Below, piece by piece: positions 12,280 through 58,117 of a DNA stretch of 64,000 bases. Position 1 is the stretch's first letter, and every line of letters begins with the position of its first letter. The notes beneath the pieces are model-generated. The model was given only the letters and a program-made list of their open reading frames with translations. It had not been told where the DNA came from and made no database searches. Origin of the DNA: Oopsacas minuta (taxonomy: Eukaryota > Animalia > Porifera); assembly GCA_024704765.1 (NCBI GenBank), contig JAKMXF010000321.1:868001-932000 (forward strand), read 5' to 3'. The position numbers and the translations under genes were made by a program.

Positions 12280-13436
12280 TATAATCTGAATAAGAGGTGC
12301 AGAACATATTTGATATCGATATTATCTTCTTTTGAGCCTTCTTCTGTACAACTTCAAACAAGTAATATAAATTAAATTTAAATTTACAACAACAAAATTG
12401 AAATAAATTACAATTGGCATGAGTAAGCAATTAGCACACTGTAGAGGATAACTTGATAAAGAACAATCTGGGTAGATTCTTGCAGTGTGAACACCGGTAT
12501 ATTATACGTTACATGAAACCAACAAGAATTATAAGAAATAGATTCAAGAAAGATATACAAGTTGTAGAATATCATATTCTCCAGAATATATAACTCAAAA
12601 GTGAACAAGAAAACAAAGACAAGCACCTTATATTGTTTTAACAATCTCTTCTGTTGTAGATACACATTAGTGCTATGGAGATGATATGCATCTATAACAC
12701 GACTATTCATGGCAGGAAAGAATCTCTTCTTAGCTATGTAGACTACGATAAGGAAACTGATTTGATCCATCAAACTTTAAGCTATGACACCAATTAGAAA
12801 AGTATATGGAAATAATACAAAAATTTCAATAAAGAAATATACAACAGTTCCTATAAAGATGAAGCAAAGAACAGTTTTCACCCTCAACTCATTTCTAGCA
12901 GCAAAGGTCAAATGAAGAAGAGATGCACCAAACATCCAAATAATCATGGAAAAAGAAAAAGAGTCCAACAAAATATTTAAATTTCCATGTGTAACACTTA
13001 ATCTATAATCATAATACCCGCCAAGGATAGTATTCGAATCTACGGAGCAGTTAAAACCGATTGGAATTTGATACTCGGAGGAATATAAAACAAACAAACA
13101 AACCCACTGGCAACTCATATTAAGCAATAAATCAGTTCAAAGCACAAAAACAGAAAAAATAATGCTACGAAAGATTTTTTCTTTTTGAATAAAGAGACCA
13201 TTTACATAATAACTGTCATTAATATTATTACACATAAGAGTCTGTAGTCTCCGTTTGTATCGTATTTGTACAAATATATCAATCATGACGTAAAATAACC
13301 AAAAGAGACATAGGATGAGGTAGATTAATTTTATAACCTGATCAATGTAATACAATATAGTATCATAAACATTGCTTATCGATGTTACAACACTCTGAGA
13401 ATTTGAACTAATATTACCTTCTTCTCCAACCATCAT
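12280..13436 (-). pseudogene. Pseudogene of the orphan 7TM family
   Basis: Colinear with intact copies (FFPAMNSRVIDAYHL, KQYKVLVFVFLFTFE, YRYQICSAPL). Has compensating frameshifts near 13160/13075, CAA>TAA nonsense at 12777-12779, a further frameshift near 12420 and a stop before the C-terminal motif. Confidence 0.85.
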
Positions 13437-14623
13437 ATTCCTTTATCAATGGTTTTCTATTATTTTCACATACGTATCTATGTTTATATACAAAAATCAA
13501 CAAAACTTAATAAGCCTATATTATTGAAAGATTTACTTTCTACCGAGATTATTACCTCAGTTTTTAAAGTCTCAGAGTAAGATGGATGCAATGGCACCAA
13601 ATTAATGTTTTTGTCAGCAACCAACAAATGTTGATTTTGTGGATCACTGCATTATATACAAGTTTTACAAAAGAAAAAGTCTGTTAACAAACCGGGAATG
13701 TATCTCAGTGCATTTCAAATTTCTAGAAAGTACTACTATCATCAACATGATTTTAGTATTCAAATTATAAAGGGTGGATGAGATTCATGAGACATAGGCC
13801 CAGAGTTGGTATCGGTTCGGGTTTGATGTTGATAATTTCGTACTTAGCACAATCATACCTGCTAACATAATTGTCTTATATCCCTGTATGGAGCCTCCAT
13901 TTCCCCTGACCCCTGTACGTTAGTCAAAATCCCTGTATACCCCATAAATGTTTTCTGGGTCACAGCGGTCGCTCGTCTAGAAAATCACTCTACACTTACA
14001 CCGAGAATAATTAAACTATCAAGATTTATTATGTACAGGGTGGGGCCGTTAACGAAAATAGGCAAAATCCCTGTATAGTTTACACTGTATAGTTTACAGG
14101 TATTCACATTGTGAATTACATATAACAATCTTTTCTTTCGAATTCTGTCTACTTGTAGAAAGAAATAATTTATATTAATAATAGAATTCTTGACTCCTCA
14201 TATGGAACTCACTAGAGGCCTAGAGGATTTGAATTATGCACTACACGTATATAACTTCGGGTTCAACAGTGTCGGGGTCGGGTTATGAAAAGTGGATCCG
14301 ATTCCAATTCTGCATATCCCATGATTAAACGTTCAAGTAAACGTAGCAGCTATTCTTCTGGCTCAGTAAGGATAAATAATACTATAAGTATTGATTAATA
14401 AACATGAATCAGTCTAGCCTGTAAATTCATTGAAATGTAAGTCAAATGTATTAAAATAAGATTGATAATATGATTAATAATGTAGATAAGAATTAGAAAA
14501 TGTCAAAATTGGAATCTACACATTCGAATACACCTAACTAAGAGTAGAAATGAAATGTTAACATGATTTTGAAATTGAATAATATGCAAAAAGGTGTGAA
14601 AATATGATAAATCATGTGGATAT

Positions 14624-15180
14624 CAGGCCTGGGGTCAATTAATTTGAAATGTAATATAGTAATATTACTTATATATTTTTACTATTACTATTACTCACTA
14701 TTACTATTACAAATTTCTTGATAATTCGTAATACTTTGCTATTATTCAGAATGTCTGAATTATATTATTTAATTGATGATGCCATACAAAGAAATATAAT
14801 ATAATATAATCTAAGCAAATAACTAATATCAATAAATTTATGTGAATTGCATTTGATCATAATTAACTTGTGTAAAACATCATCAAATATTGAATATCTT
14901 TCTGGCATAAATAATTTCCCTGCAATACTAAACAGTCTCTCTACAGGTGCTGATTAGGCTGAGACAGATTAATATTGCTGAGCTAATTTAGCTAATATAC
15001 GTAGAGACTTGCTCTTAACGGCTATAGATGAGTATCAAAGGGTTGGATGAGATAATAGGCATAATTATGTGTAGGATTAAATTGGAATTAGATTAAACCT
15101 CCCAGTAAGCGAAGCTGTTGTTCTCCTGTAGTACTCAATACATACAACTTACAAATATAGTAATTAAAGGACAAGCCGTG
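14624..15180 (-). mobile_element. Degenerate hAT transposon end with C-terminal dimerisation-domain relic
   Basis: Minus strand LAKLAQQY*SVSA*SAPVERLFSIAGKLFMPER...KLIMIKCN matches the hAT dimerisation domain; terminus CAGGCCTGGGGTCAATT at 14624. Confidence 0.75.
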
Positions 15181-15313
15181 TAGACGGGGTAGTAGAATAT
15201 ATTTGGAAACCTCAACCTGTAGATTCATTGAAAAATTTATTTGTTAAAATGTCACAGATTGTCATGCATAAATGAAGAGAATATGAATAATAAGTATCAA
15301 TAATGTCATGAAT

Positions 15314-16045
15314 CTAATCTAGCGACCGATATTGTCTCGTCTTCTTTTCCCTGGGAGGAGATTGATCTCTCTCTCTGGGGTATCGGGAGTGTGAACTGGA
15401 TAGGTGTTGGTAGGATCTGGGGCTTCTAGCACTGTGTATGAGAGGAGAACGACTGTAAGGTCTACTCTTACCCTCCGTGGAGTGAGAACGTGACCTAATC
15501 TTCTGACCATATAGCTTGAAACTGAGATATTTAGAGATAGGCTTGAAATGTACAAAGCCACAATACCCTCCACGAGTACAATCCCCAGTTTCATACAGAC
15601 GACAACAAGCCTCACGAAAGTCAGTCACAGGGGAGAATTCAGCTCGTATTGGCTGTCCATTGAACCATCTGTTGTTGAGAGAGAGCACTGCTTTCTCTGC
15701 ATCCTCTTCCTTACGGAACTTAACATACACATTCCCTATGAGATGATCACCTATGTTATCACACACATTCAGCTCTTCTATCTCTCCGTATTTCTCCTCC
15801 AACTCAATGAACACATCCTCAAAGAATGTGTCGTAATGCTCTTGCTGTTCTCCCCCACTCATCATCTGTAGATTTCCATCAGTGTGCTGGTACAAATTCT
15901 GCATTAGTATAGTCTGACTGGATGTAGGCTTGTTGTGTAGACGGGAGCAGGCCTCTCCGTGACGACATGCTCCTATCTTGAAGTAGAAGGAACAGTTTAC
16001 CTTGTCATTTTTAGTACCGAAGATTGAAGCAAGATATTCTGCCAT
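15314..16045 (-). CDS. U2AF1: Divergent U2AF small-subunit paralog (U2AF1-like B), 243 aa, intronless
   Basis: ZnF1-UHM/RRM-ZnF2 architecture with intact CCCH ligands and an intact ORF. The ORF-track start at 16057 is TTG; the ATG is at 16045. ZnF2 reads CCRLYETGDCTRGGYCGFVHF and the RS tail is degenerate. Confidence 0.88.
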   Translation of the reverse strand: MAEYLASIFGTKNDKVNCSFYFKIGACRHGEACSRLHNKPTSSQTILMQNLYQHTDGNLQMMSGGEQQEHYDTFFEDVFIELEEKYGEIEELNVCDNIGDHLIGNVYVKFRKEEDAEKAVLSLNNRWFNGQPIRAEFSPVTDFREACCRLYETGDCTRGGYCGFVHFKPISKYLSFKLYGQKIRSRSHSTEGKSRPYSRSPLIHSARSPRSYQHLSSSHSRYPRERDQSPPREKKTRQYRSLD

Positions 16046-18010
16046 ACTGTATGGCAATGATTAGCAACAATAAATATTAGCATTCTATACAAATATGCAA
16101 TGACACAATTGAAAATATTATACATCATAGAATGGAATGCAATTTACATGGCTAAAGAACTCAGAGCTAATGGTGATGAAGTTTAGTAAGTATCATTCAG
16201 GTGGATAAAATTTGCTTGAAGTCAACATCCCTGATTTGGTACAAGTGGATTATTCACTTTATGAAACAAATTCCAACCCAAGTCCATACTTACCAACCAA
16301 CCCTGAATCCCTGAATTCTCTAGGACTTTACAGAAATGTAGGGAAATTTTGCAGATATATGTGCCTTTTTCCCAAATATAGACTGAAATTTATGGAAGTA
16401 TACCTTTCATACTTATCAACCCCTGTAACTGCTTCCCTGGATTCCTAATTTTATATGCAAATAATATGAATTTTTCCCTCCATTATAAAAAATAACGCCA
16501 TAAATATTTTCCCGTGGATAATCCAGGGATCACTGGATGGTTGGCAATTTCGCACAAGATTAACTTCTAAGTAATTGACAAGCCAAATGTATTGGAACCA
16601 CTTGTGTCACATGGCTATAATATATTGAGTATTATCATACTGGTTTTCCCAGGTTGGTGAATTGCTAGTTTGCAGTGTGACAACATGGCGATTATGGGGT
16701 AATAGATACTTACACTGAAGATATATGTTAAAATGTTGTCATATATAGTAAATCGATACTGTAAATTTCAAAAATGGCACCAGATTTTTAGTTGCACTTC
16801 TGAAAAATTGGACTATGACGTAATCTGTGGCATTTTGATATAATCAATAATTATGGTTCAAGAATAAATGAGTTCTAAATTTGTGAGTGTGTTATACCAG
16901 CTAGCCCTATTTATTGACAAAGATGAATAACAATGCGTATACTGAATTCATGTATGCATTGGATACTTCATAAAATGATACTAATGAATTAGAAGTACAG
17001 AAATATAAAATGTTATAACGAAAATACAATTTTTCTAAAAATACTTTTCGTCCGAATGGGTCTGCCCCATACACTTAATGTCAAGAAAAGTATAAGTGGG
17101 CGCTTTAGGCGGGTCTATAAATTATTGAAAATTAAATTTATAAAGATATACTATGCGAAATTGTCAACTATTCAACTTGCAATTGTTTGCATTGTAAGAT
17201 CGGGGACCTAAAAGGTAGGTCAAAGAGCTGAAACATGGATAACATTAGACGGCTAAAAATGCTTTGAGAATGAAAAATAAAGATTTAATTTGTTTTGCAA
17301 ACGAGTTAAAATTAATCACTAAATACATACGAATACTGATAAATGCCATTGAATTACTAAAAATCCTGGAATGCTGAAATATTACAAGGTTATTTGAAGA
17401 ATAAATATTTGTGGTTTTCAGGTTTACAAATTTCAAATTTTGCCTAAGTTTGAGCCTTTGGTTAGACATGTTATAAGTTCATTAAGCAACTAATAATAGA
17501 ATATTTCTAGGTTTGAAATAGTGAAAAATCGAATACACGCTCATTAATTTTGGTAAATAGCTAAGTCAAATTTTCGCCTATTACCGCATAGTTCCACACT
17601 GTGGTTTGCTAGGTAATAAGTAGTTATTAATACAAGTTTGAAATCATTTCTAGTAGTGTTATGCTCTAGTAATCTAGTCTACTCGTCTGTTCGCCAAATC
17701 TACAACTTTGGATGAAGTGTACAATAGCGTCGATACAATGTTTCAGTTGACAAGTTGGTGCGTGTTTCGTTTTCCCGCTAATTTATAATCCCACTTTGGA
17801 CTCAAGGACATTTCATGTCTGCAAAAAAGCCCTGGATGGATGTCTGGATCTCGGAAGTTCGGCTAAACATGCATATATTGATTAGTTGCATGGGTTAAAT
17901 TCATTGAATAGTCATGCATTAGCTAAACTAATAGTGACAGACAAAATTTGGTGAATAGCTAAAATTAGGACAGTTATACAAATCATTTATCAATAATGTC
18001 AGTTATGATT

Positions 18011-18769
18011 CTATTCTCGTGACCGAGATCTTCTCCTCTCCTTATCTCTGCGAGGAGATCGACCTCTCTGTCTCCCAGGGGAGCGGGAGCGACGTCTGGG
18101 TGATCTGGGGCTTCTAGTCCTGCGTCTGGGAGGAGAATGACTGTAAGATCTATTATATCTCTCCGGTGAGCGAGAATGTGACCTCCGGATAATTTTCTGA
18201 CCGTACAGCTTGAAGCGAAGATCCTTAGAGATAGGCTTAAGATGCATAAAATTACAATACCCTCCACGTGTGCAGTCTCCAGTTTCATACTGACGACAAC
18301 AAGCCTCACGAAAGTCAGTCACAGGGGAGAGTTCAGCTCGTATTGGCTGTCCATTGAACCATCTGTTGTTGAGAGAGAGCACTGCTTTCTCTGCATCCTC
18401 TTCCTTACGGAACTTAACATACACATTCCCTATGAGATGATCACCTAGGTTATCACACACATTCAGCTCTTCTATCTCTCCGTATTTCTCCTCCAACTCA
18501 ATGAACACATCCTCAAAGAACGTGTCGTAGTATTCCTGCTGCTCTTCCTCACTCATCAAGGAGAATGTCTGTAGAGTTCCGTCAGGGTTCTGAGTACGAG
18601 TAGCAGGGTTCTGGTATAAATTCTGCATTAGTATAGTCTGACTAAATGTAGGCTTGTTGTGTAGACGGGAGCAGCCCTCTCCGTGACGACATGCTCCTAT
18701 CTTGAAGTAGAAGGAACAGTTTACCTTGTCCTTTTCAGTACCGAAGATTGAAGCAAGATATTCTGCCAT
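18011..18769 (-). CDS. U2AF1: Splicing factor U2AF 35 kDa subunit, canonical, 252 aa, intronless
   Basis: MAEYLASIFGTEKDKVNCSFYFKIGACRHG..CSRLH, CCRQYE...CNFMHLKPIS, RS-rich tail. Confidence 0.97.
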   Translation of the reverse strand: MAEYLASIFGTEKDKVNCSFYFKIGACRHGEGCSRLHNKPTFSQTILMQNLYQNPATRTQNPDGTLQTFSLMSEEEQQEYYDTFFEDVFIELEEKYGEIEELNVCDNLGDHLIGNVYVKFRKEEDAEKAVLSLNNRWFNGQPIRAELSPVTDFREACCRQYETGDCTRGGYCNFMHLKPISKDLRFKLYGQKIIRRSHSRSPERYNRSYSHSPPRRRTRSPRSPRRRSRSPGRQRGRSPRRDKERRRSRSRE

Positions 18770-23145: not shown

Positions 23146-24279
23146 ATGAATAACAGTTCTAATCTACACACAGAACTCCACATTCTAAAGGAAACTAGCT
23201 ATATAGAGAAGTTAATCGGTCTGGGATTAATACCAATCTATATCATATTATGCCTCGTGTGGTTACCCTACATTATAGCCAGGATTTTCTCACGAATTAG
23301 AAACAAAAGGAGACTTATTACTTTAATGAGTCTAGATAGTAGTTGTGATTATACGTATCGTCTCTTTGTCCAGAAGGAAGATATTTTCCGGTATGTTATG
23401 TTTCTTGTATTTCTTTGCTTTGAGCTGATCTGCTGCTTGAGTATAACTATATACGGAGTCATAATAGAACTCAAGTTAAGCGTTGATGTGATTCCAGTTG
23501 GTCCGAACTGCTCAGTAAATTCGAAAACATTCATCGGCATTTCATATGATAATAGATATATCATTATTATTCAGCATTTAGTCTTTCTGTTCGGTGCTTA
23601 TTCATTTTCCATGATGATTTGGTTGTTTGGTGCTCTGCTTCTTCATTTGAGTTTTGCAGCTAGAAATGAGTTGAAAATACAAATAGTGCTACGCTTCATC
23701 TTGTTTGGGATACTTATTAATCTCATCATATTAATATTCTCATGTATTCGATACACTAATATTTTCGGTGTCATCATACAAAGTTTGATGAATCAAATCA
23801 GTTTCTTTATTGTACTCTACATAACTAAGAAGAGATTCTTTCCTGCCATGAATAGTCGTGTTATAGATGCATACCATCTCTATAATACTAATGTGTATCT
23901 ACAACAGAAGAAATTGTCCAAACAGTATAAGGTGCTTGTCTTTGTTTTCTTGTTCACATTTGAAGTGTATATTCTGAAGTATATATGTTTTTATGATTTG
24001 TATGCAATAATTGAAACAATCTCTCTCAATCCTTGTTGGTTTCAAGTAACCTATCATCTCCCTATACTCATGATATCAGGATCTTCAAAGGGTACACTTA
24101 CTCAAATCAGCAGTTATTGCCTGGTATTCAATAACTTCATTGATCTTCTTATCTATTGTATATTTATGATCGTAAACCTGAACATTATGTATGTCACAGC
24201 TAAGAGATGCATTAAGAGCCGATTTTATGACAGAGAAAGATATCGTTATCATGTCTGTTCTGATCCTTTATTGTCTTGA
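23146..24279 (+). CDS. Orphan 7-transmembrane receptor-like protein, 377 aa, intronless
   Basis: Seven hydrophobic segments by eye, N-terminal NxS sequons, basic predicted cytoplasmic loops; paralogous to three other intact ORFs. Confidence 0.85.
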   Translation: MNNSSNLHTELHILKETSYIEKLIGLGLIPIYIILCLVWLPYIIARIFSRIRNKRRLITLMSLDSSCDYTYRLFVQKEDIFRYVMFLVFLCFELICCLSITIYGVIIELKLSVDVIPVGPNCSVNSKTFIGISYDNRYIIIIQHLVFLFGAYSFSMMIWLFGALLLHLSFAARNELKIQIVLRFILFGILINLIILIFSCIRYTNIFGVIIQSLMNQISFFIVLYITKKRFFPAMNSRVIDAYHLYNTNVYLQQKKLSKQYKVLVFVFLFTFEVYILKYICFYDLYAIIETISLNPCWFQVTYHLPILMISGSSKGTLTQISSYCLVFNNFIDLLIYCIFMIVNLNIMYVTAKRCIKSRFYDRERYRYHVCSDPLLS

Positions 24280-25424: not shown

Positions 25425-26540
25425 ATGAATAACAGTTCTAATCAACACACAGAACTCCACATTCTAAAGAAAACTAGCTATATAGAGAAGTTAATCGGTG
25501 TGGGATTAATACTAACCTATATCATATTATGCCTCGTGTGGTTACCCTACATTATAGCCAGGATTTTCTCACGAATTAGAAACAAAAGGAGACTTATTAC
25601 TTTAATGAGTCTAGATAGTAGTTGTGATTATACGTATCGTCTCTTTGTCCAGAAGGAAGATATTTTCCGGTATGTTATATTTCTTATATTTCTTTGCTTT
25701 GAGCTGATCTGCTGCTTGAGTATAACTATATACGGAGTCATAATAGAACTCAAGTTAAGCGTTAATGTGAGTCCAGTTGGTCCGAACTGCTCAGTAAATT
25801 CGAAAACATTCAGCAGTTTTTCTTATGATATTCAGAAATTTCTCCTTTTGTTCGATGCTTTTTCATTTTCCATGATGATTTGGTTGTTTGGTGCTCTGCT
25901 TCTTCATTTGAGTTTTGCAGCTAGAAATGAGTTGAAAATACAAATAGTGCTGCGCTTCATCTTGTTTGGGATACTTATTAATCTCACCATATTAATATTC
26001 TCATGTATTCGATACACTAGTATTTTCGGTGTCATCACACAAAGTTTGATGGATCAAATCAGTTTCTTTATTGTACTCTACATAACTAAGAAGAGATTCT
26101 TTCCTGCCATGAATAGTCGTGTTATAGATGCATATCATCTCCATAGTACTAATGTGTATCTACAACAGAAGAGATTGTTCAAACAGTATAAGGTGATTGT
26201 CTTTGTTTTCTTGTTCTTATCCGAATTAGTTATCCTGAAATGTGTATGTTTGTATGATTTGTATGCAATAATTGAAACAATCTCTCTCAATCCTTGTTGG
26301 TTTCAAGTAACCTATCATCTCCCTATACTCATGATATCAGAATCTTCAAAGGATACACTTACTCAAATCAGCAGTTATTGCCTGGTATTCAATTATTTCA
26401 TTGATCTTCTTATCTATTGTATATTTATGACCGTAAACCTGAACATTATGTATGTCACAGCTAAGAGATGCATTAAGAGCCGATTTTATGACAGAGAAAG
26501 ATATCGTTATCATGTCTGTTCTGATCCTTTATTGTCTTGA
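25425..26540 (+). CDS. Orphan 7TM protein, recent tandem duplicate of 23146-24279
   Basis: Nearly identical CDS and flanks. The first ATG (MNNSSN) is at 25425; the ORF-track start at 25383 is GTG. Confidence 0.85.
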   Translation: MNNSSNQHTELHILKKTSYIEKLIGVGLILTYIILCLVWLPYIIARIFSRIRNKRRLITLMSLDSSCDYTYRLFVQKEDIFRYVIFLIFLCFELICCLSITIYGVIIELKLSVNVSPVGPNCSVNSKTFSSFSYDIQKFLLLFDAFSFSMMIWLFGALLLHLSFAARNELKIQIVLRFILFGILINLTILIFSCIRYTSIFGVITQSLMDQISFFIVLYITKKRFFPAMNSRVIDAYHLHSTNVYLQQKRLFKQYKVIVFVFLFLSELVILKCVCLYDLYAIIETISLNPCWFQVTYHLPILMISESSKDTLTQISSYCLVFNYFIDLLIYCIFMTVNLNIMYVTAKRCIKSRFYDRERYRYHVCSDPLLS

Positions 26541-30154: not shown

Positions 30155-31315
30155 ATGATTAACTCTTCTAACAAAAGTTCAGACCCTCGCCCCGATGAGT
30201 TTACATATCTAAACTCTGTTAACGATAAAGTGTATTATGTTGATCAGGTACTGGGATTTGTATACACTTCTCTATGTGTATTCTGGTTAGTTTATGTCAT
30301 AATATGGGTATTAACAACGATAAAGCAAAGAAAGAATTTAATTCATTTAATGAAGAGAGACATTACATACGATTATAGAGTTCGCCTCTTCTTAAAAACC
30401 GAATCAATCTTAAGGAATGTTATTTTTCTTATTTTTCTATGTTTCGAGCTGAGCTATTGCTCAATCATAAACATTTTCGGGTTTTTGTATTTCTTTTATA
30501 ATCCTGAGGATATCTTGATCTCGATTGGTTCTAACTGCACATTACAAACAGGGACATTTCTAGGGAATGCATATGACACTAGAGTTGGTCTGGTTGCTCT
30601 TAATGTTCTTTCAATTTGTGGCTATTTATCGTTTTCCATGATGATTTGGTTTTTCGGTGCATCTCTTCTCCATTTGAGTTTTGCTGCTAGAAATCAGCTG
30701 AAAATGAGAACAGTTCTTCACTTCATCTTGTTAGGAATAGTTATCAATATAGCCTTCACAATAATTACACTAATTCCATATACTAGCATATTCGGTAAAA
30801 TAGCTCAAAGCTTGATGGATCAAATCAGTTTCTTTATTGTGCTCTATATCGCTAACAAGAAATTCTTTCCTGCCATGAATAGTCGTATTATAGATGCATA
30901 CCATCTCTATAATCCCAAATTACATCATCAACAAAAATATTTGCTAAAACAATATAAAGTACTTGTTTTTGTTTTCTTATTTACTTTTGAAATATATATT
31001 CTAAACAGTTTAATCTTCTACAACTTGTTTGTTATTTTAGAATCAATCTGTGTGAATGCTTGTTGGTTTCATGTGACTTATCATCTTCCTATGTTCACAA
31101 TACCAGAGTCTACGAATCATACTCTCAGTATAATCTTCTATTACTTTTTAATATTGGTACATCTAGCTGACTTTATTGTTTATTTCAATTTTATTGTTGT
31201 GAATTCAATTTTTCTATTCTTTCTATTCTTTAGATTCTTTAGGAACAGATTTTCTAAGAGTATGAGTTATCGATATCCAATATTCTCTGCTCCTTTATTA
31301 CCCAATAATGAATAA
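30155..31315 (+). CDS. Orphan 7TM protein, 386 aa, intronless
   Basis: Same family motifs; closest to the copy at 55582-56733. Confidence 0.85.
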   Translation: MINSSNKSSDPRPDEFTYLNSVNDKVYYVDQVLGFVYTSLCVFWLVYVIIWVLTTIKQRKNLIHLMKRDITYDYRVRLFLKTESILRNVIFLIFLCFELSYCSIINIFGFLYFFYNPEDILISIGSNCTLQTGTFLGNAYDTRVGLVALNVLSICGYLSFSMMIWFFGASLLHLSFAARNQLKMRTVLHFILLGIVINIAFTIITLIPYTSIFGKIAQSLMDQISFFIVLYIANKKFFPAMNSRIIDAYHLYNPKLHHQQKYLLKQYKVLVFVFLFTFEIYILNSLIFYNLFVILESICVNACWFHVTYHLPMFTIPESTNHTLSIIFYYFLILVHLADFIVYFNFIVVNSIFLFFLFFRFFRNRFSKSMSYRYPIFSAPLLPNNE

Positions 31316-32452: not shown

Positions 32453-33815
32453 GTTCCTGCTAGGACTATCTAAGAATCATGAAACATAAATGGAAATGCG
32501 ACCAAATATCATTCAGAATTGTCAAAGGATCTAATTTACATACAATATTACTATCGCTACTGGAGTAAGTGTATAATCTGTATTTTTGATTAAGCGCATA
32601 GGTGTTGGCTATTAGCAATTTTTCTAGAAATAACTGAAGTACGTTTGGTATTAGAAATATTTCTTGTAGTATTATTCTCCTTAGTGGTTTCTCCCTCGGA
32701 AGTTTGACATGTATATTGCCTAGCATGTATTGGAAACCCTACCACTTGTAACAGAAGGGGGACATGGCGAGAATATGCTGAATATTGTGTGGATATAGCA
32801 CAGTGGCATAGCTATCTTGGGTGGACTAATGGTGCATATGCAGAGCATTAAGCGTTCCTCATTTTTGGAGCGCGCTCCCACTCCTGAAAAAATGAGCACG
32901 ATCCAATCGTGCTCATTTTCATTTTTTTCTGATATAAATTAGATTTGTGTAATCAGCATTGAATTTATCCATTGTATATTCCTTAAATTGCAAAAGGTGC
33001 AACGACAAACCATCCTTATGTATATTGTTGTGAATAATGAAAAGTGTCCCAGCAACCACTTTTTAGCAATAATACTGAATATATGCCTAATATCGATTAA
33101 ATTTGCAAATTGTTTCAATTAATAGGCGCGCGCTCCTGTGTATCCGCACCTCCAGAAATGGAGGGCTGCTCCACCTTTTGCTCCTGCATCATAAATTGAA
33201 CGCGCCCCAGGTCCCGCTCCTTTAATGTTCTTTCCATATGTGGCGAACTTGTACTACTGGAGCACTAGTACACAGCGTAATTCCTTACACAGCGCAAAAA
33301 TGTAGATCAAAAGGGCCTTTAGCTACCTTGTCTACGCCACTACAGAAAGTAGAAAAATCGCCTTTTTCTAATTGATTGTGATTAAATTTTATCCAAGAAT
33401 GTTTGAAATCATCTTCAGCTATGCAACTAACGTGGTATGCATATTGGCGCCATGGGTTAATTGTGACAGGAAGTTACAAAATATTTTGGACAGCAGTCTA
33501 GTTATCTCCCGTTATCTCTCCATTTATGCATAATAACGCCTTGAAAGGCGCTGAGCAAAATGTGAGGCCAGTTTGATACTAATCATTTAAAGATCTGGCT
33601 CACCAAAACTTAAAAAAACTAGAATAACAATTAAGAGGGAACCAACAAATAGCACCCCGGGGGATATACTTAAGGAAAATAATGTGACACCCTAACAGCA
33701 AGGTTGGCGTATTCTAGCTAGGAAATTTTGGAATATACGATTTCCATAGACTAACTCAACTGCACAAAATTATATTAGAATAATTATCATTCTGGATGAT
33801 AAAATACTTACTCAC

Positions 33816-36800
33816 CATCTTTGAGAGAGTTCCAACGAGAAAGAGGTATAGTTAGTGATTCAATAGCTGTGTATTTTCTGAATCGTCTGCCAAACCAATA
33901 AGCAAGATTAGATTTAAGTTCCAAAGTAACAACCAGGTCAATCTTATAATGATAAGTATTTTCTTTGATAATTTCGCCATAAGTTTCAGATAGTTGTGCA
34001 ATTAAAATATTCAACATGACAACGATTATTGTGAAGGAAAATCCTAAATATACAATAGTAAAAAAGAAATTATCTTGTAAGATGTCCTCTACGTGATTTC
34101 CTGGGCCGCCATCCAACATGAACATCAGTCCAGACAGCAGAGGTCGCCTCAGATCATACAAACAAGTCAGTTCTTGGTTAAACCAAAAGAATTCTGATCG
34201 AGTGTTGTTACACACCTGATAAGGCGGGTTTGAACAAATATTTATATTTTGATTAAGTGTTGGCTGCTGTCTCGCTGCTAGATGAATACCGCCAATATAC
34301 GCAATCAAGATTATAAAAACAAGGATGAAGAACCGAGGAATATCTATCACAAATATCTTGAATACGCCACTCACATATGCACCTAATGCTGGAGATATAC
34401 GAGTATATTTGAAGAGTGAAAGACTAAAAAAGATAAATGTAAGTCCAGCAAATGACCACTGTAAATAGAAACTAGTTGCTCTCAGGAAAATTAAGACAAT
34501 GAAAGAAACAATTCCTAACCAATCGATAAAGTTATAAACACCATCAAAATACTCCGGGAATGCACTGAAAAAATATTTCAGCTTTACATCTAATTTATGG
34601 AAGAGAAAAAGGAAATTTTTCCATTTCAAGAACATTTTAGATAGACAGGTTTTGTCTTTTTCACTTACAGTGTCGTTAAGATATTTTACTATTAATTGAG
34701 TCTCTTCACATTTATTCACGTTGTCTTCATAAACCTGTGTCCATTCTATTAGAAACTCAACTCCTTCATTAAATAAGAAGAACATTATGTATAGCAGACA
34801 TATTATTTCACAAATCCCCCTAACCCAGTCTGCAGGGTTCTGATAAAGCCAAATATTAGAATCACATACGGTAGAAGCTTGAACTAGAGCATAAGCTAGG
34901 CAAATGAGGAAAAAGAGATAGAAAAAGAAGGAAATTATATACCACCAGCGGTAGAAGCGTAACTTCTTGTCTACAATTATACTGACTAGAGGATGGTACT
35001 TCAATTCCTGATCTGGACAATCTTTCAGTTTATGTAAGAAAGATTTTTCCAGAGGTTTGAATTTAGGATCGTTAGGGTATAGTCCACTATCATTTGAATC
35101 GAATAAAATAGTATCTGCTGAAACCTTCCCTATATAATAGAAATATGTTAAAAAATATTTAATATAACTCAGTCTTAAGTTATGCAATAACTTCAATGGT
35201 TTTATGAACTTTTTTCATGCTATGAAATAACTATAACCTATTGGTGCTATCCCCACCACGCTTACTAACAATAATTTAGTGTCAATTCGCCTACTCATTG
35301 TTTAATCTTCTAATTATCAATTGAATCCTAATTCAAAATAAGCCCGTACATGTGTTCCAAGCTCTTCTAACCGGCTTTTTGAGTTCTGGAGTCATATTTA
35401 ATATTTCATGGATTAGCATACAAATGTCTCTCAAGGCGTGGATGTAGAACTGTTACCATTTATAACTATTGTAGGCGTGGTAAGTATAGTTCGTTTGATG
35501 AATCTAATCATTAACTCACCACTACTTTTATTCTCAACTACTGATCTATTTATGACCTCTTTAACTGTATCGTATAGTTTACTTTCATAAATTTTGTGAA
35601 TCTGTTTAGGATCTTTGTGATAATAATCTTTCGGTGCCCAAACAATAAATAACTTCAAAACCGGTTCATTTCTACATTCTAGTGCTAAGTCATATGACGA
35701 TTGACCCTTGTTATTACGAATCATGTATATCTGTTGTTCTCTTGTTACTCCTTTCATCGGAGCTATTCTTCGTAATAGACATTTTGCTGAAGCACAAGAG
35801 TTATATTTTGCAATATGATGAAGTACAGTATTTCCTTCATTATCTCCCTTCACTAGTGTTGTACCATAATTCATAATGATAGGAATGTAGTCAGCATAGT
35901 CTTTATCTGCAGCTAGCATGAGAGGTGTTGTGCCGTCCTTAAGCGGTTCCTCTGGTTTAGCTTTGTAATCAAGTAACATCTTAACGATCTCTTTTCTACC
36001 TTCTCGAACAGCTAGATGCAAGAATGTGTCATCGTCATTTCCAAACACTACATTAGGGTCAGCTCCATAACGTAATAAAACATTAACCACAGAGTTCTGA
36101 CCTTGAAGAGTGCCTTGATAAAGAGGTGTTCTATCTGAGTTATTCCTCTGATTGACATTCATTCCTACTTCCTTAATCAAGTACTCCACAATAGCAGCAT
36201 GCCCACCATATGCTGCAGAATGTAAGGCAGTATTAGCCATGTCTTTGTGTACAAGATTTGCTCCATGCTTAATCAATAGCTTTGCACAATCAAACTGTCC
36301 GAATTCAACTGCATTATTTAATGGAGAAAATCCTGGTATGTTCTTTCCAATGAAATTTGGGTTAGCCTTAGCTCCTAGTAATACCTCTAAAACTCTTATA
36401 TTCCCTTTCTTAGCGGCGAGCTTAAGAGGCGGGAAGCCTTTTCTATTCACCACATTAAGCGGAGTCTTCCTATCAATTAGAGCCTCTGCTAATGCTACAT
36501 TATCTTCCGTTGCTGCTATATGTATAAGTTTCCCAATATCGCTATCAACTTCTGCTTCTAAATCCATATATTTTAATATTATTTCTATCGTAAGCCTATC
36601 ATCTGTCAGCATGACGGGAATCTTCTTAGCTTTATTCTGAAGTAGAAAACACTCTTTGAGTTCCTCTAAACAAAGTGGAATTGATAATATGAAAATTTGT
36701 CTGACTCAGGGAGCATTGTAAATCAAAGTATGCTATTATATCTCTCCACAATTAATGGTAGAATGTGAACAAATTTCGCGGTTAACTTGAAGGGAGCAAA

Positions 36801-43348: not shown

Positions 43349-43579
43349 TATATCATATAAAACTTTTAAATGGTAAAATATACAGAAGAGATTGATAATT
43401 TTCTATTTGCAATCCTATTTACTAATCTCTTTTTGTAATTTAAAGTTGTGAATTAACCAAGGTTGCATTAACAGAATATTACCAATATTCGGTTGGGCAA
43501 ACCAATTAATATCAGTATGTTGGGTTACTATTCATGAATACAGATATTCGTTTCGATCGGGTTCAACCTTGGAATTAAC

Positions 43580-43700
43580 CAATCATATAACTAACCAGAA
43601 TACATACATAATACACTATATCGTAAACAGAATGTAAATTAATTAATTCATCAAGAATAGGGTCTGGACTTCGTTAGAAGAGTCAATCATATTTGGTAAA
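43580..43700 (-). pseudogene. 5' relic of a 7TM family gene
   Basis: ATG ATT GAC TCT TCT AAC at 43690 (MIDSSN), then a degenerate match to DPRPDEFTYLNSVNDKVYYV..CVFWLVY of the 30155/56733 copies; the rest is missing. Confidence 0.7.
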
Positions 43701-44382
43701 AATATTGTTAATATTGTTTAATAATTACCGAGTATTTATACTATAAATGAAGCATGGATAATATTTCATGAGATTTTATATTGAAACAATTGCTTTAGCG
43801 GCATAACATCATATTTAATTACTAATTTTGTTGACTATTGCATCATTGGAATCAGCGTACGCCATTACCCAAGTATAATCATTGGCTATTTACTAAGTAT
43901 ATGTTTAATATATTTTCATAAATACAGTCAACAGGTATCTCGAATGCCGGTTAACTCGAACGAATTTAATTAAAATATAGATCATTACTATATAGAACTT
44001 ATCAAAGGATAGTAAATTTCCTGGGGAATGGCTACCCTAAAGCAGAGTTTCTCAAATTCACAAGGAATAAGGCCATGTCGAGTAGGTCATAACCACATCC
44101 AAGTCGAATTGGTTCAGGTTTTGCCATACTTGTTTAGAAACCCTGCTCTAAAGCCAAATCTGATTAATACAGTCATTTTCATGGATGTACTCCTATCTGA
44201 TATTTCAAGTGCATCCCTGGCTGTTACAATCGTAAGACATAATTGCTTACTTGAGCACTACACATTGTCTTTCTAGTGAAAATGGTCAAACAAATTAAGT
44301 AAATTAATCAATAATATAATAAGCATAAAATAACAATCTATGAATGAGATTCATTAGAAAGAAATTAGTATTATTATTATTA

Positions 44383-45498
44383 TTATTGCATCATAGCCCT
44401 TAGGACATATCTTCCAAAGAGTGCTACAACAGTAGCTACATTAGCAAAAGTTAAGAATTTCCATTTGTACTTCTCCCAAAAAGTGTTGACATTAGTAGAC
44501 ATCTCACTTTGTATATTCTTGATTTCCTTCTGGGCGTCCTTCTGTCTATTTTCAGTATTTTTACACTTGGTCTCATCTTCACTTATCTGTTGTCGCAAAG
44601 TGACCATTTCTTGAGTAAACCCTTCCTGACCAGACAAGCTATCCTGCATTTCATCTAGCTTTTTAGTTCGTTGCGAACTATCAATTTTACACATTTCTAA
44701 TTGAAATTTGAGTATTTCAACTTCATCCAACAATGATTTTTCCTTCATAATAAGTTTATGGCATTGGACATAAAGGTCCTTGCCTTTGATCATTAAGTCG
44801 CAATTAAAACGGATTGATTTATTCATTGAATTAATAACGCTTATGTGATCTACTAGCTCGATTACTTTTTTCTCCCAATACTCATTGCTCTGTGAGTATT
44901 CTGGGGACATTAACTCTATTTTCATATAACGCTTATCTACTCGTTTATATATATCAATGAATATTTCAGAGCATCCAGGACTGTCAATGTAGGATTGCAA
45001 AAAAGACTCACTGGATTCGTTTTGAGAATCTGTCATCTTAGCTTCATGAGTGAAGACGATGAATGAATACTTCCAAAACGTATCTCCAAGAGTGTTAAGG
45101 ATGTGGATTGCTTGTTGGTGTCTCTTATCAGAAAACCTATCACTTCCGTTTATCACAAACACAATTGCATCCAATCCATCACGAGCTAACATCCCTGCTC
45201 TACAGATCTCACTCAATACTTTGGATGTTTCCTTGTCTATGTCTACAAATCCTGGACAGTCAATCACTTTAAATATCTTTTCATTAAATTCGAAGAAATA
45301 GCTTTTCGTAATATTGGTAACAGATTTCATACTGGATTTAGCCTCAAAAAATTGGCTTTTTACAAGAAAGTTACAAAGAGTACTTTTACCAGCTCCAGTT
45401 GCCCCGATAAATAGTAATGAAATGTCATAATTGGATGGCTTCTCTATCTCAAAATAATCTTCATATTCAATGTCTGGACTTGGTCCTGAAGTTGCCAT
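44383..45498 (-). CDS. AIG1/GIMAP-family GTPase with coiled coil and hydrophobic C-terminal tail, 371 aa, intronless
   Basis: G1 GATGAGKS, G3 DCPG, conserved box GLDAIVFVI, IVFTH; coiled coil; C-terminal KWKFLTFANVATVVALFGRYV. Confidence 0.88.
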   Translation of the reverse strand: MATSGPSPDIEYEDYFEIEKPSNYDISLLFIGATGAGKSTLCNFLVKSQFFEAKSSMKSVTNITKSYFFEFNEKIFKVIDCPGFVDIDKETSKVLSEICRAGMLARDGLDAIVFVINGSDRFSDKRHQQAIHILNTLGDTFWKYSFIVFTHEAKMTDSQNESSESFLQSYIDSPGCSEIFIDIYKRVDKRYMKIELMSPEYSQSNEYWEKKVIELVDHISVINSMNKSIRFNCDLMIKGKDLYVQCHKLIMKEKSLLDEVEILKFQLEMCKIDSSQRTKKLDEMQDSLSGQEGFTQEMVTLRQQISEDETKCKNTENRQKDAQKEIKNIQSEMSTNVNTFWEKYKWKFLTFANVATVVALFGRYVLRAMMQ

Positions 45499-50510: not shown

Positions 50511-52971
50511 ATTAATTTCAAGACATAATTCTATTATAAATAATCACCTTACCAATATCGACACTGCTTTCAATTCTTCTTATTGGTAAGCTTACGTCAT
50601 GAATACTTTTGCAAAATAATTCAATGTATGTAAGTCTATGACTATTAAACAGTATCTACTGTAACATATAATAATAGATAAGTAATTGAATTATCTGGTT
50701 GCATAATTCTTCAATTGGATTGAATAGTTTCCAAATCAAACTGAACTCAGCACTCTCAAATAGTAGATCATTGAAATGTACAATTTTGTATATTTCATTG
50801 AAATTAGTATACTGAGTAAATAAGTCAAGTTTGTCAAATGTCAAGAATTCTGGTTTTCTCATTCTATTATCAGGATATGATCGAGGGATATGATTATATC
50901 TTCAATAGGGGTTGCTGAATTCCAAATTTGTTCTTGAAGGCCCAAAGTGCACACAATGATAATTAAAAATAAATTTAGCTAATCCCCGAGAAATTCGATG
51001 TGTAAGGAGCATTTAGAACTAATGGGGACTAATGCTCCCAAGATGATAAAGAGATACAAGAACCCCAAAATGTTAATGATACATAGCATTGGCTGGTAAT
51101 ATAAGATAACGAAGCAACTCATTGTGATTTATGAATGTTTCATAATTAAATAGTTTGGGATAATTTATACATGAAATGGCGGGCCCAATGATTTCTCGAC
51201 CGCTACATAGTGCATCATGCTTGGAAGATTTTATGAACCGTCTGTTAAGTTGATGAACTATATTTTGAGGTCATAAATTTTTGATGGCCTTCGGAAAAGC
51301 TCATCAAATTTGAGGATAATTCTTTAAATGCAAAATCTTCCAAATAGCGCACAATTTTGGGTCGCAAATGTTAAGATCCGAATATATTCGTTGATTGGCC
51401 TATCATAATAACTTTCCTAATAACATACATTTGATACTTTGTATTTATTAGTTAACCAAAACATGATAAAACGTGTAAATATATTATGTGACAATAATAT
51501 TTGAATAACCATAATACATATTACGATAGTTATCATAAAATGCAAGTATAAGAAGGTGAATCTTATTTACAAATTTTGATGGATAAATGCATTGATGACC
51601 TACTGTTTGGATGCATCAAAATTGGTGATCTTTATGGGAAATCATCAACGACATCTATGAATTGTACAGTAGCTCCTCCAGGGTTGCCGTGGATATGGAT
51701 ATCTACATTCTGGTCATATCGCACAAAAATGAAACATTGTACAAGGAGGAGTGCTTTATTTGATAATTAGTAATAAATACTATCTCTTTTCATGTAATCG
51801 TTGAAAATTTTACTGTTGACTATTCATAACAATACCATGTAACCCCATATATGTAAGTTCTCATTGATAATCAACTTCACAAATTTATCAATGGCGTTCC
51901 ATTATATCAGTCGCCATGTTAGTATTGGAGATTCTGAGATATAATTCTGCCAACTACATACTATATGTACCGAGATCTAACAACAAAATGAGAATATCAA
52001 ATTCTTACAGAATCAATATATTCACGTCCAAAAAGGGCCACCAAGCATACCCGGATTCTTAGAGACACTTGACATGTGAAGAAGTGATTCTCAACTGACT
52101 TTCGCGATTATTTGGCCTTAATAATTTGATATACTCCAGATTCAGATTGTTATCTCATAACGATAACATATGAGAAAAGATATTTTAGGATAATTATAGT
52201 TTCATTTCTATACATAATTAGCTTAATTCAATTGTTTGTAAAGCTTGCTCTTGTAATAATGGATAAGTATTTATTCTGTTTAATGTGGATAATTAAATCC
52301 TTTAAAGTTCTTTGTGTAAGAAACTTCAGGACCACCCTGAGAAGCTTAAAATGTATAAGTTGCAATTTGCAATCATAAGACATCTGAATTTTATTGAATA
52401 AATATTTCAGAACATCGTTAGTACATAGAATTTCGGAATAAAATAGATTAATTCGAGGTAAAGTGACGCATATTTCAACCAAGTCGGGAGAATGTCGACG
52501 AAATCAAATGGGTGGAAAGTATTAACTTAGGGAAATATGTACGTATTTTATCTCACCCTAGGACTCCTCACACTAGTCCCACAATTATGGGGAACATCTC
52601 ACCTTAGGGCCACGAGTCCAAATTGAGGGGGACACTGGTCCAAGCCAATAGCGCACTACTTATGTGATTATAAAATCCTAATATACTAGTGTGTTAACTA
52701 GAAACCCAAGAGCAAGGGTGAATATTTACCTCATAAAAATAGCGATTACAATCGTGAGATGAAGCAACGGGTGAAAAAGCGAGGTGGCAATTGCTTTCTT
52801 TGCCCAATGCTAGTTCCTCCTGGAAAGCAGTAGAATCACTACAGAGTAATTGAGCATATATTTAATATTGATGATGGCACATACATATACAAATAGTATG
52901 AAGTATTGTTGATATACAAACTAGATTACTGGGAAACAGAACCTTTTAAATGACATCAAAGAAATCAAGAC

Positions 52972-53274: not shown

Positions 53275-53779
53275 TTTTTAGTAATGTGTTTCTCTTCTTA
53301 TTAATTTCATTGGATTAATTCGAGTATTTATAATAAATAATTATATTACATCTATCGACACTGCTTTCTAATTTATTCATGGATAAGCTCACGTCAATAA
53401 AATGTTTACAAAATAATCAACTAAAGAGAATTGTACCTAAATTGATAATCTATCGCTTAATATCATTTTATATAATTGATTTCACTGAAAGCACACGTAA
53501 TACTTCTTAATAATTGTATTTAATCTTTTTCAGATAATCTGAATTCAGTACTCTTCAAAATGATTGAATATGTAATACTATAACACGCATAATCCCATAT
53601 GTCGATTTTCTAATTATACAAACTTAAGAGTTAAGACTAATTTGTAATATCGTTCATTTTGTGATTACGTATATAGAAATCAATACAGTTTACTTCAAAT
53701 AGTTGAATGAGATATATTCAGCAGTAAATTGTTACTGATTGTATAGGAATATTATACCATAGAGGAAATCTGATATATT

Positions 53780-54151
53780 CAGGCTTGCCGTGGAGGAGAA
53801 AAATCCCATCCATATCCATATCCATATCCATATCCATGTCATTTTTGCGTGGATATCCATGGATATTTATCAATAATCTAATATAACCTGTCTCTAACAG
53901 TAACCCAAGACTGACTAGTAGTGACCGTTATGTACAGGTAACCGCTATGCAGAGGTTGATTAATGTATTAAATGCTATACTAAATCTCTAGATATTATGT
54001 AAACTATCATTCATAAACTAAAAACCCTCAATATCACTACAATCCTCAAATGATAGTGGTATTGATTCATTATTGATGGCCTTTCTACTTCCATGGATAT
54101 GACCAAAACCTAGATATCCATCCATGGATATCCATATCCACGGCAAGCCTG
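53780..54151. mobile_element. hAT MITE with perfect 8-bp TSD
   Basis: TIR CAGGCTTGCCGTGGA / TCCACGGCAAGCCTG; TSD GATATATT at 53772-53779 and 54152-54159; (ATATCC)n subterminal repeats. A related end occurs at about 51679 (CAGGGTTGCCGTGGATATGGATATC). Confidence 0.93.
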
Positions 54152-55581: not shown

Positions 55582-56733
55582 TTATTTATTTGGTAACAAA
55601 GGAGCAGAACATACAGGATATCGATATCTCTTGGCTTTTCTCTTCATAAAGAATTTCAACAATAGAAAGAATAGAAAAGTTGAATTCACAACAATAAAAT
55701 TGAAATAAATAATAAAATCAGCTAGATGTACCAATATTAAAAAGTAATGGCTGATTATATTGAGAGTATGATTCGTAGACTCTGGTATTGTGAACATAGG
55801 AATATCGTAAGTCACATGAAACCAACAAGCATTCACACAGATAGATTCAAAAATAACATACAAGTTGTAAAAGATTAAATTGTTTAGAATATATAATTCA
55901 AAAGTAAATAAGAAAACAAAAACAAGTACCTTGTATTGTTTTAGAAAAGATTTTTGTTGATGATGTAATTTGGGATTATAGAGATGGTATGCATCTATAA
56001 CACGACTATTCATGGCAGGAAAGAATTTCTTCTTAGCGATATAGAGCACAATAAAGAAACTGATTTGATCCATCAAGCTTTGAGCTATTTTACCGAATAT
56101 GCTAGTAGATGGAATTAGTCTAATTATTGTGAAGGCTATATTGATAACTATTCCTAACAAGATGAAGTGAAGAACTGTTTTCACTTTCAGCTGATTTCTA
56201 GCAGCAAAACTCAAATGGAGAAGAGATGCACCGAACAACCAAATCATCATGCAAAACGATAATTCTCTAAAAATTGAAAGAGCATTAAGAGCAATGATAC
56301 CAACTCTAGTGTCATATGCATCCCCTAGAAATGTCACCGTTTGTAATGTGCAGTTAGAACCAATCGAAATCAAGATATCCTCAGGATTATAAAAGAAATT
56401 CAAAAACCCGAAAATGTTTATGATTGAGCAATAGCTCAGCTCGAAACATAGAAAAATAAGAAAAATAACATTCCTTAAGATGGCTTCATTTTTCAAGAAG
56501 AGGCGATGCATGCTATTGCATGAATTATCTATTTGCATTCTATCTACTAATCTCTTTTTGTATTTTACTGTTGTGGATAAAACAATTATGGCATAAACTA
56601 ACCAGAATACACATAGAGAAGTGTATACAAATCCCAGTACCTGATCAACATAATACACTTTATCGTTAACAGAGCTTAGATATGTAAACTCATCGAGGCG
56701 AGGTTCTGAACTTTTGTTAGAAGAGTCAATCAT
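55582..56733 (-). CDS. Orphan 7TM protein, intronless
   Basis: Close paralog of 30155-31315. Start placed at MIDSSNK (56733) by homology and TATA spacing; an upstream in-frame ATG exists at 56751. Confidence 0.85.
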   Translation of the reverse strand: MIDSSNKSSEPRLDEFTYLSSVNDKVYYVDQVLGFVYTSLCVFWLVYAIIVLSTTVKYKKRLVDRMQIDNSCNSMHRLFLKNEAILRNVIFLIFLCFELSYCSIINIFGFLNFFYNPEDILISIGSNCTLQTVTFLGDAYDTRVGIIALNALSIFRELSFCMMIWLFGASLLHLSFAARNQLKVKTVLHFILLGIVINIAFTIIRLIPSTSIFGKIAQSLMDQISFFIVLYIAKKKFFPAMNSRVIDAYHLYNPKLHHQQKSFLKQYKVLVFVFLFTFELYILNNLIFYNLYVIFESICVNACWFHVTYDIPMFTIPESTNHTLNIISHYFLILVHLADFIIYFNFIVVNSTFLFFLLLKFFMKRKAKRYRYPVCSAPLLPNK

Positions 56734-57329
56734 ATTGGTAAATTCTATCATTCAACAAATGAGTTGAGTTTTATACTTAATATTGTAGAAATAAACTTGG
56801 GTATAATATTACGGGGAAATTCCTACTGGTTGATGTATAAAATTTCATTAACAATATTGCATAATATGTAATTACCAAATTTGTTGGTTCAGTCAATAAT
56901 TCATTTTAATAGAGGATAGATTATAAATCATATCCTCTATAAGACTTTTAAGAAAGAGAGATTATGAGTGAGACTAAAGAATTTATCATTTTATATCATC
57001 GACTCCTAACAATCGGAAGCCCACCTTATCGAGCTAATCAACACATTTATAGGATCACTATCAAAATAGTTATCATTTACCTGAATGATATATCAACAAT
57101 ACACGGATTTGATTCATCTGATTGCCCAATAGATTGATATGTTGAGTATTAGATGTTTACATTATTAATCAATTAGAGTTACCATTAGTGAGCATTTATG
57201 TCTAGCCCTAGAGAGATATCCATATCCTTAAATCAATCTTCATATACAACTAATATTACATGATTCAGCCTACGATATACATATGTGTATATTACACATT
57301 TATTTACAATTAATTAAATATAATGTTTC

Positions 57330-58117
57330 CTCAAGCAGAAGTTCAAACTCTCAATATATCGATAACTTCCGCCATTCTGAATTCTATTGGTGCTAACTCT
57401 TATTATATTGATCAAGTACTTGCACTGATATCTAGTAATTGAATAATTTCACAAATAAGATACAAAAGGAGACTTGCCAAGTTATCATATTTATAAGGTG
57501 ATACCGTTACATATTATCAACATAAGCTGTACTTACGGAAAGAGAGTATAACTCGTAATGTTATATTTCTTGTATTTATGTGGATCAAATCAGTTTCCTT
57601 ATTGTATTCTATATTGCTATGAAGAAATTCTTTCCTACCATGAATAGTCGTTTATAGATGCATTCTATCTCACAATACTTGGGTATATCTGCAACAGAAG
57701 AGATTGTTCGGGCAGTATAAAGTGCTGTTATATTTATTCCTAATCACATTTGAGTTATACATCCTGAAGATGATTATCTTCTACAACTCATATGCAGTAT
57801 TGGAATCTATTAGTGTGAATGCTTGTGGGTTTCATGTGACCAATCTTTCCCCACAGTTTACAATTTCAAATCCTACAAATATACTTCTTGCGAATATTAG
57901 TACCTACTGTTTGTTATTGGTACATCTGACAGACCTTGTCATCTATTTTAACTCTATTTTAATTAGTTTAATGTATATTTATGTAACCCGTGTGAAATAC
58001 ATTTGGAGAATATTTGGTTACAGCAAAACGTATCGTTATCGTTTTCAAGCATTTTTATGTAATCAATCTGTAGTTACTAATTCTATTTGTATTTTGTATA
58101 ATGTATTTGAGTATTAG
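57330..58117 (+). pseudogene. 7TM family pseudogene with a large internal deletion
   Basis: N-terminal/TM1 remnants with stops; TM2 sequence (TTTCTTGTATTT) is joined directly to TM5 sequence (GGATCAAATCAGTTTC) near 57575; frameshifts; C-terminal YRYRF motif retained. Confidence 0.85.

Follow-up and report, generated by a model that had tools for sequence, protein, structure and literature searches.

The window described here, by which we mean the whole stretch of 64,000 nucleotides that was analysed, comes from the glass sponge Oopsacas minuta (assembly GCA_024704765.1, contig JAKMXF010000321.1, positions 868,001 to 932,000 of the forward strand) and carries members of a family of intronless genes for seven-transmembrane (7TM) proteins, whose predicted fold is that of the G-protein-coupled receptors (GPCRs). 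Four intact paralogues, each a single open reading frame (ORF) for 371-386 aa, were obtained from the ORF listing and its translation, and three decayed copies are present as well; the copies, none of which has introns and whose counts agree with the four intact and three dead ones of the initial annotation, are:

23146-24279, + strand: intact gene, single ORF of 377 aa, on public record as a hypothetical protein (P0230)
25425-26540, + strand: intact gene, 371 aa, young tandem duplicate of the 23146 copy, publicly annotated (P0231)
30155-31315, + strand: intact gene, 386 aa, whose protein was used for structure prediction
55582-56733, - strand: intact gene, 383 aa (389 aa from an in-frame upstream ATG at 56751)
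12253-13442, - strand: near-full-length pseudogene with at least three in-frame stops and several frameshifts
57314-58117, + strand: pseudogene, head-to-head with the 56733 copy, with stops and two frameshifts
43397-43690, - strand: 5' relic of ~300 bp, from the start codon and N-terminus to loop 1, opening with MIDSSNE

ORFs are present at all four positions from which the intact copies had been named (23146, 25425, 30155 and 56733), and the motifs by which the family had been characterised, G(P/S/F)NC(S/T), FFPAMNSR(V/I)IDAYHL, CWF(Q/H)VTY and YRY...S(D/A)PLL, were all found. The four intact proteins form two pairs, with identities of 88-90% and 80-83% within a pair and of 46-50% between pairs, and 166 alignment columns are invariant among them. 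By exact look-up, the 23146 gene corresponds to 891,146-892,279 of the contig. The public O. minuta gene set has no gene called at the 30155 position, though both neighbouring copies are called, and the public record holds no product identical to the 30155 protein, nor to the 383- or the 389-aa form of the 56733 protein; the family is probably under-annotated in this gene set. On the same contig, ~35-55 kb upstream, lie four further intact members and one fragment, and one of these members is the annotated hypothetical protein LOD99_11795.

The decayed copies were detected by tblastn, nhmmer and a six-frame hidden Markov model (HMM) scan, and by blastn at the DNA level, and they consist of two long pseudogenes and the 5' relic. 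The stops of the 12253-13442 pseudogene include those at 13137-13139, 12777-12779 and 12322-12324, and FFPAMNSRVIDAYHL and IGFNCS remain readable in it. The 57314-58117 pseudogene has lost ~117 codons, from the end of the second transmembrane helix (TM2) to TM5 (profile positions ~100-216). The 43397-43690 relic, in which stops, a deletion of 36 nt and an insertion of ~120 nt are present, was detected at the DNA level only (blastn E of 2e-14 and 5e-15) and stayed below threshold in protein searches. Two further family matches, at 50982-51128 and 44369-44611, were weak and at protein level (E of 0.2-0.4) and were taken as chance.

Hydropathy gave seven hydrophobic segments, in agreement with the seven helices of an AlphaFold2 (AF2) model of the 30155 protein, so that the number of transmembrane helices first proposed is borne out by both. 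The charge distribution follows the positive-inside pattern, the 23146 protein having 26 Lys and Arg in the predicted cytoplasmic segments and 6 in the outer ones. Sequons N-x-S/T are found in the N-terminus of 34 of the 40 relatives that form the closer alignment, as expected from the glycosylatable N-terminus of the initial annotation, and the N-C-[S/T] sequon of the first extracellular loop (ECL1) in 23 of the 40. The AF2 model, built from the 40-sequence alignment, reached a mean predicted local distance difference test score (pLDDT) of 86.4 and a predicted template modelling score (pTM) of 0.84. Its long helices span residues 13-68, 72-114, 144-178, 184-206, 208-250, 254-300 and 318-366, with a beta hairpin in ECL1 at 121-131, a short helix in ECL3 at 303-309 and a break of one residue between TM4 and TM5. 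A second AF2 model was made for a relative from Vazella pourtalesii, which is 13-17% identical to the window proteins, and it too has seven long helices (pLDDT 80.7, pTM 0.79). In both models the junction between TM4 and TM5, in the place of ECL2, is reduced to 1-3 residues without Cys, as had been anticipated from the near absence of a loop there. According to these models, the N-terminus would be short (~30 aa), glycosylatable and outside, the C-terminus would be inside, and TM1/TM2 and TM5/TM6 would project long into the cytoplasm.

Comparison of the models with solved structures retrieved GPCRs. Foldseek against the PDB placed only GPCRs in its top 50, TAS2R4 being among the matches of the window model, with a probability of ~1, E values of only 2e-3 to 5e-2 and poor TM-scores, the latter because the long helices superpose badly. 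With an exhaustive structural aligner, the top 50 matches were all of the GPCR fold for the 30155 model (Z of 15.1-17.4) as well as for the Vazella model (Z of 16.1-18.7), and the alignments covered 240-297 residues, spanning ~11-368. The 30155 model was matched best by FZD1 (Z 17.4 over 297 residues) and MRGPRD (Z 17.3), then by CX3CR1, P2Y4, GPR174 and GPR55 (Z of 16.9-17.0), GIPR (16.4), Smoothened (15.9), GPR97 (15.8), LYCHOS (15.6) and designed GPCR-like folds (15.6-15.8). Judged from the two models, the fold of the family is that of a GPCR, and the structural scores favour no single GPCR class; the receptor-like reading of the first annotation is strengthened, since the two models align with solved receptors from classes A, B and F and from the adhesion group at Z of 15-18.7 over 240-297 residues. 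A shape search of the ESM Atlas with the window model returned weak mixed rows (TM of at most 0.44) and a feature search of the same Atlas various 7TM clusters, all below 0.92; neither was used for kinship.

These structural matches raise the question of a class A origin, in which the family would be a very diverged rhodopsin-like offshoot, similar to the demosponge rhodopsin expansions and with ordinary G-protein coupling. Most of the best structural matches do belong to class A, the rows of the Vazella model bear class-A or unnamed-receptor titles with the exception of FZD1, and the 23146 protein, in the model of the Atlas itself, lies nearest to a 7tm_1 cluster (TM 0.58/0.69). From their position in the helices, the Arg closing TM3 (AARN), the acidic residue of TM2 (FLCFEL) and the Asn low in TM7 could also be remnants of R3.50, D2.50 and N7.49. 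However, FZD1, SMO, GIPR and adhesion receptors score equally for the window model, and class A origin further conflicts with the lack of DRY, CWxP, NPxxY and a TM3-ECL2 disulfide, together with the near disappearance of ECL2. We consider such an origin unlikely, also in view of the sequence searches presented below.

The missing motifs were searched by regular expressions in the 40 sequences of the closer set and in 37 sequences of a broad set, and the result agrees with the earlier remark that no DRY, CWxP or NPxxY is visible. NPxxY is absent from all 40 and 37 sequences. CWxP is not family-wide, with two chance matches among the 40 sequences of the closer set and none among the 37 of the broad set. 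No DRY-type triplet stands at the end of TM3, which reads AARN, in any of the 40 and 37 sequences, and the triplet [DE]R[YFWH] turns up only a few times, at scattered positions elsewhere. The TM3-ECL2 disulfide is missing as well: there is no Cys in the TM4-TM5 junction and no conserved Cys atop TM3. When alignments extend down to 10-20% identity, no residues besides the initiator Met stay invariant except C128, which belongs to the N-C-[S/T] sequon of the ECL1 hairpin, and C303, which opens the short helix of ECL3 (in the CWF motif; numbering of the 30155 protein). Because these two Cys alone are invariant throughout the superfamily, a disulfide between ECL1 and ECL3 is probable. The idea of such a bond in place of the usual one, raised when the sequence was first read, thus gains indirect support from the alignments, since both Cys are invariant down to 13% identity and ECL2 is too short for the canonical Cys.

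The distribution of sequence constraint along the protein was evaluated by column entropy, averaged by region over the 40 relatives. The lowest value was that of the cytoplasmic extension of TM5, which contains FFPAMNSRxIDAxHL (0.50 bits), followed by the second intracellular loop (0.72 bits) and the TM6 extension (0.91 bits), with TM4 (1.59 bits), ECL1 (1.73 bits), TM7 (1.80 bits) and the N-terminus (2.25 bits) at the other end. The conserved cytoplasmic face consists of HLSFAARN at the end of TM3, FFPAMNSRxIDAxHL in TM5, QQKxLLKxYK in TM6 and the YRY...PLL tail; the variable regions are the N-terminus, ECL1, TM4, TM7 and the outer part of TM3. The tail Y-R-Y-x5-P-L-L, nearly invariant in the intact copies (e.g., 31270-31312), has an aromatic-x6-LL spacing and lies in a low-confidence, probably disordered region of the model. 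We take this spacing to resemble the F(x)6LL motif for export from the endoplasmic reticulum of some class A receptors.

The family stands isolated at the sequence level. Pfam gave zero families for the four window proteins at E<=10, and for ten distant relatives at E<=1 it gave no GPCR family, with sub-threshold matches to unrelated families only. Profile searches of PDB chain sequences with two alignments found no receptor; the chance matches were a succinate dehydrogenase subunit (E 3.7) and a designed helical protein (E 0.035). In an exhaustive profile search of 1.84 billion cluster representatives, 83 were found at E<=1e-3, many of them fragments, and at this threshold the family profile retrieved no protein outside the family. 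A word-index search yielded ~260 proteins, and of the matches of its broad profile the best 120 were listed. These results also bear on a class A origin, against which stand the absence of any 7tm_1 match (for the four window proteins at E<=10 and the ten distant relatives at E<=1) and the fact that the profile stays within the family among the 1.84 billion representatives, ten of its weakest full-length matches having been scanned without a Pfam family. No paper describing the family was found in the literature, and the orphan status suggested at the outset is upheld by Pfam and the PDB sequence profiles, neither of which gives a described family.

Wherever a match bears a species label, the species is a glass sponge, either O. 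minuta (NCBI) or Vazella pourtalesii (EukProt Trinity transcript). Most matches come from the long-contig ENA assembly ERZ25072730, which has no species label, and metagenome scaffolds from samples SAMN144228xx-144229xx, taken to be Vazella sponge samples, carry further ones. Demosponges, other animals and other eukaryotes gave no match above threshold among the 1.84 billion representatives. The lineage specificity suggested earlier is in line with these 83 representatives, of which the labelled ones belong to O. minuta and Vazella pourtalesii only; as far as sequence searches go, the family has so far been found only in Hexactinellida and matches no described receptor family. One Vazella member has exactly the same protein sequence in four samples and is flanked by Det1-like and ART-like genes. 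An 11-kb sponge-derived scaffold (ENA ERZ23489589, SAMN14422898) carries at 760-5115 three tandem genes of ~370 aa, which belong to the most distant clade of the family, and one of the three shares a 90% identity cluster with a Vazella pourtalesii Trinity transcript. A distant member is also encoded on a Logan contig of 1329 nt, which comprises precisely one complete ORF and has no poly(A) tail.

The history of the copies combines old lineages with recent duplication. A quick maximum-likelihood tree distributes the O. minuta copies over four or more subfamilies, each of them joined with sequences of other assemblies, and recent local duplicates are superimposed on these subfamilies. Between the two old window lineages, the ratio of non-synonymous to synonymous substitution rates (dN/dS) is 0.25-0.28, and because of these values the family as a whole is regarded, from sequence comparison, as being under purifying selection. 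The 23146/25425 pair has a dN/dS of 1.08 at a synonymous divergence (dS) of 0.044, and the 30155/56733 pair a dN/dS of 0.76 at a dS of 0.12; the recent duplicates seem to evolve near-neutrally or under diversification, the counts being too small to separate the two. The duplication unit of the 23146/25425 pair takes in ~175 bp upstream and 88 bp downstream. The 30155 and 56733 genes, 25 kb apart and in opposite orientation, are 91% identical in nucleotides, with 95-97% identity across the greater part of the coding region, and differ in a 110-nt loop-1 patch (64% identical; 56484-56593, - strand) and at the 3' end (81%), and their flanks are essentially unalignable. This mosaic is best explained, judging from the alignments, by segment exchange between paralogues (gene conversion). 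The relic at 43397-43460 (- strand), 13 kb off, resembles the loop-1 patch of the 56733 gene with 84% identity, a likeness which may stem from segment exchange or from an older lineage common to both.

Copy turnover, segment exchange and outward variability are hallmarks of recognition systems too, and the family could serve self/non-self or microbe recognition as an immune-type repertoire instead of environmental chemosensation. A GTPase gene which by eye is AIG1/GIMAP-like lies within the cluster at 44383-45498. Nothing specific speaks in favour of this function, and against it stand the Vazella member mentioned above, whose identity in four samples argues against strong allelic polymorphism of that member, and the purifying selection on the old paralogues. 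We regard an immune function as very improbable. The ORF at 44383-45498 (- strand) encodes a P-loop GTPase-like protein of 371 aa that contains a coiled-coil and, at the C-terminus, a hydrophobic anchor; it has no identical product on record, and the receptor 5' relic lies ~700 bp downstream of it.

We favour, with somewhat better than even confidence, the interpretation that these genes form a glass-sponge-restricted birth-and-death family of GPCR-fold surface receptors, which share a predicted cytoplasmic partner, probably a G protein. A repertoire of surface receptors is proposed because of the combination of GPCR fold, outside N-terminus, sequons, conserved extracellular Cys pair, variable outside over constant inside and dozens of arrayed intronless copies, among which pseudogenes and segment exchange occur. 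In the mechanism we envisage, the variable outer halves would bind different extracellular ligands, and activation would be relayed to one common cytoplasmic partner docking on the conserved inner face. This partner would probably be a heterotrimeric G protein; coupling to G proteins is what a GPCR fold leads one to expect by default. The repertoire itself would turn over through local duplication, gene conversion between copies and pseudogenisation. Eight G-alpha genes have been reported in O. minuta (PMC10280926).

Several points weigh against this interpretation. The sequences lack the class-A microswitches DRY, CWxP and NPxxY, and therefore a G-protein mechanism is not readable from sequence. 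Helical bundles have a background Z of up to ~13-14 in structural comparison. The public gene set lacks two of the four intact genes, which may reflect low expression or a mere annotation gap, and the dN/dS of the young duplicates (0.76-1.08) fits relaxed constraint as well as diversification. The missing activation motifs would also agree with a GPCR fold that has no role as a G-protein-coupled surface receptor and acts instead in trafficking, as a scaffold or in a transporter- or channel-like manner, as for LYCHOS/GPR155, GPR107/108 or TOM1/THH1. The structural comparison returned LYCHOS (Z 15.6), clusters of THH1/TOM1/TOM3, GPR137 and PRRT3/4 are found, as leads only, among the language-model neighbours at 0.86-0.91, and the invariant cytoplasmic motif is like no G-protein interface known to us. 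Nevertheless, a large fast-turning family with tandem arrays, pseudogenes and a variable outside over a constant inside has the pattern of a ligand-diverse repertoire, while housekeeping 7TM proteins are usually single-copy and widely conserved, and the profile search of the 1.84 billion representatives found this family nowhere outside glass sponges. A non-receptor role seems to us improbable, slightly more so than a class A origin.

Returning to the preferred repertoire of surface receptors, a bolder version of it can be put forward tentatively, as a conjecture with appreciably less than an even chance of being right: the family may be a separate GPCR class, which arose in glass sponges or survives only there, in which an ECL1-ECL3 disulfide over a hairpin lid would replace ECL2, FFPAMNSRxIDAxHL would serve as the transducer dock and the copies would form a chemosensory repertoire. 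If this were true, such receptors might, for example, pass signals from the surroundings to the electrically conducted arrest of the feeding current.

The other genes of the window were characterised from their ORFs. At 15314-16057 and 18011-18769 (both - strand) lie two intronless paralogues similar to the U2AF small subunit (zf-CCCH/RRM), 2 kb apart, of which the ORF at 15314-16057 has a listed start without ATG and a diverged RS-like tail at the C-terminal. The region 33808-36612 (- strand) contains an ankyrin-repeat ORF (35431-36612) and then a multi-pass channel-like ORF (33808-35196), which the public record gives as one ankyrin-containing gene of 1187 aa; this looks like a TRP-type channel within the receptor cluster. 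Finally, a long ORF at 59658-63992 (- strand) presents by eye several SH3-like repeats, then a DH/PH-like region (intersectin-like), and coincides with a rise of G+C to 0.41 and an AT skew of -0.16.

Although they lack neurons, glass sponges conduct action potentials through their syncytium, and their sensing of the environment is poorly known. A large taxon-restricted family of receptor shape, whose inner face is constant, offers a concrete candidate for their sensory input. It would add to the GPCR fold a structurally distinct branch that differs in its extracellular disulfide, has hardly any ECL2 and lacks the classical microswitches, and it bears on the flexibility of the activation machinery of this fold and on the origin of receptor repertoires in early animals. 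Since two of the four intact genes of the window are missing publicly, published receptor counts for the O. minuta genome are probably underestimates.

Among known systems, the 7TMIC proteins (insect OR/GR-like) differ from this family in topology: the charge distribution and the sequons of the N-terminus and ECL1 indicate an outside N-terminus, contrary to that of 7TMIC, and no OR, GR or 7TMIC structure appears in the top 50 of either model. With class B and adhesion receptors, the likeness is at the level of the fold only (GIPR Z 16.4, GPR97 Z 15.8), the family having neither a Pfam 7tm_2 match nor an ectodomain. Class F receptors (FZD1 8j9n, FZD4 6bd4, Smoothened 4o9r) provide with FZD1 the best single match of the window model and share with the family helices projecting beyond the membrane and the absence of class A motifs, whereas the family, whose N-terminus has ~30 aa, lacks the cysteine-rich domain and linker, a Pfam Frizzled match and a KTxxxW-type tail, and superposes with a root-mean-square deviation (rmsd) of 5-6 Å. 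Class A GPCRs (MRGPRD 9dqj, P2Y4 9k0k, GPR174 8kh5, NTSR1 8zyt, CB2 6pt0) have the same seven-helix connectivity and topology, with Z of 16-18.7 and an rmsd of 3.1-4.7 Å over 240-270 residues at a sequence identity of 6-15%, and they resemble the family in the short glycosylatable N-terminus, the intronless genes and the extended TM5/TM6. In class A, ECL2 carries a conserved disulfide to TM3; the family instead has the ECL1 hairpin and the invariant Cys pair of ECL1 and ECL3.

Sponges reportedly hold expanded receptor sets without bilaterian orthologues, as a GPCR study of Amphimedon queenslandica is said to have found, and the expansions there are reported to consist of HMM-recognisable rhodopsin, adhesion and glutamate members. 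The glass-sponge family differs from that repertoire in being matched by no Pfam model, with labelled matches that are hexactinellid only. A parallel in organisation is offered by the nematode Sr, vertebrate TAS2R and V1R receptors, which have intronless or simple genes, tandem and dispersed arrays, frequent pseudogenes, birth-and-death evolution and a ligand side that varies while the signalling side is constant. The family has no sequence kinship with them, its predicted extracellular disulfide pattern is different and its host class is without neurons or sensory organs; it nevertheless shares with them the arrays, the pseudogenes, the birth-and-death evolution and the pattern of a variable outside over a constant inside.

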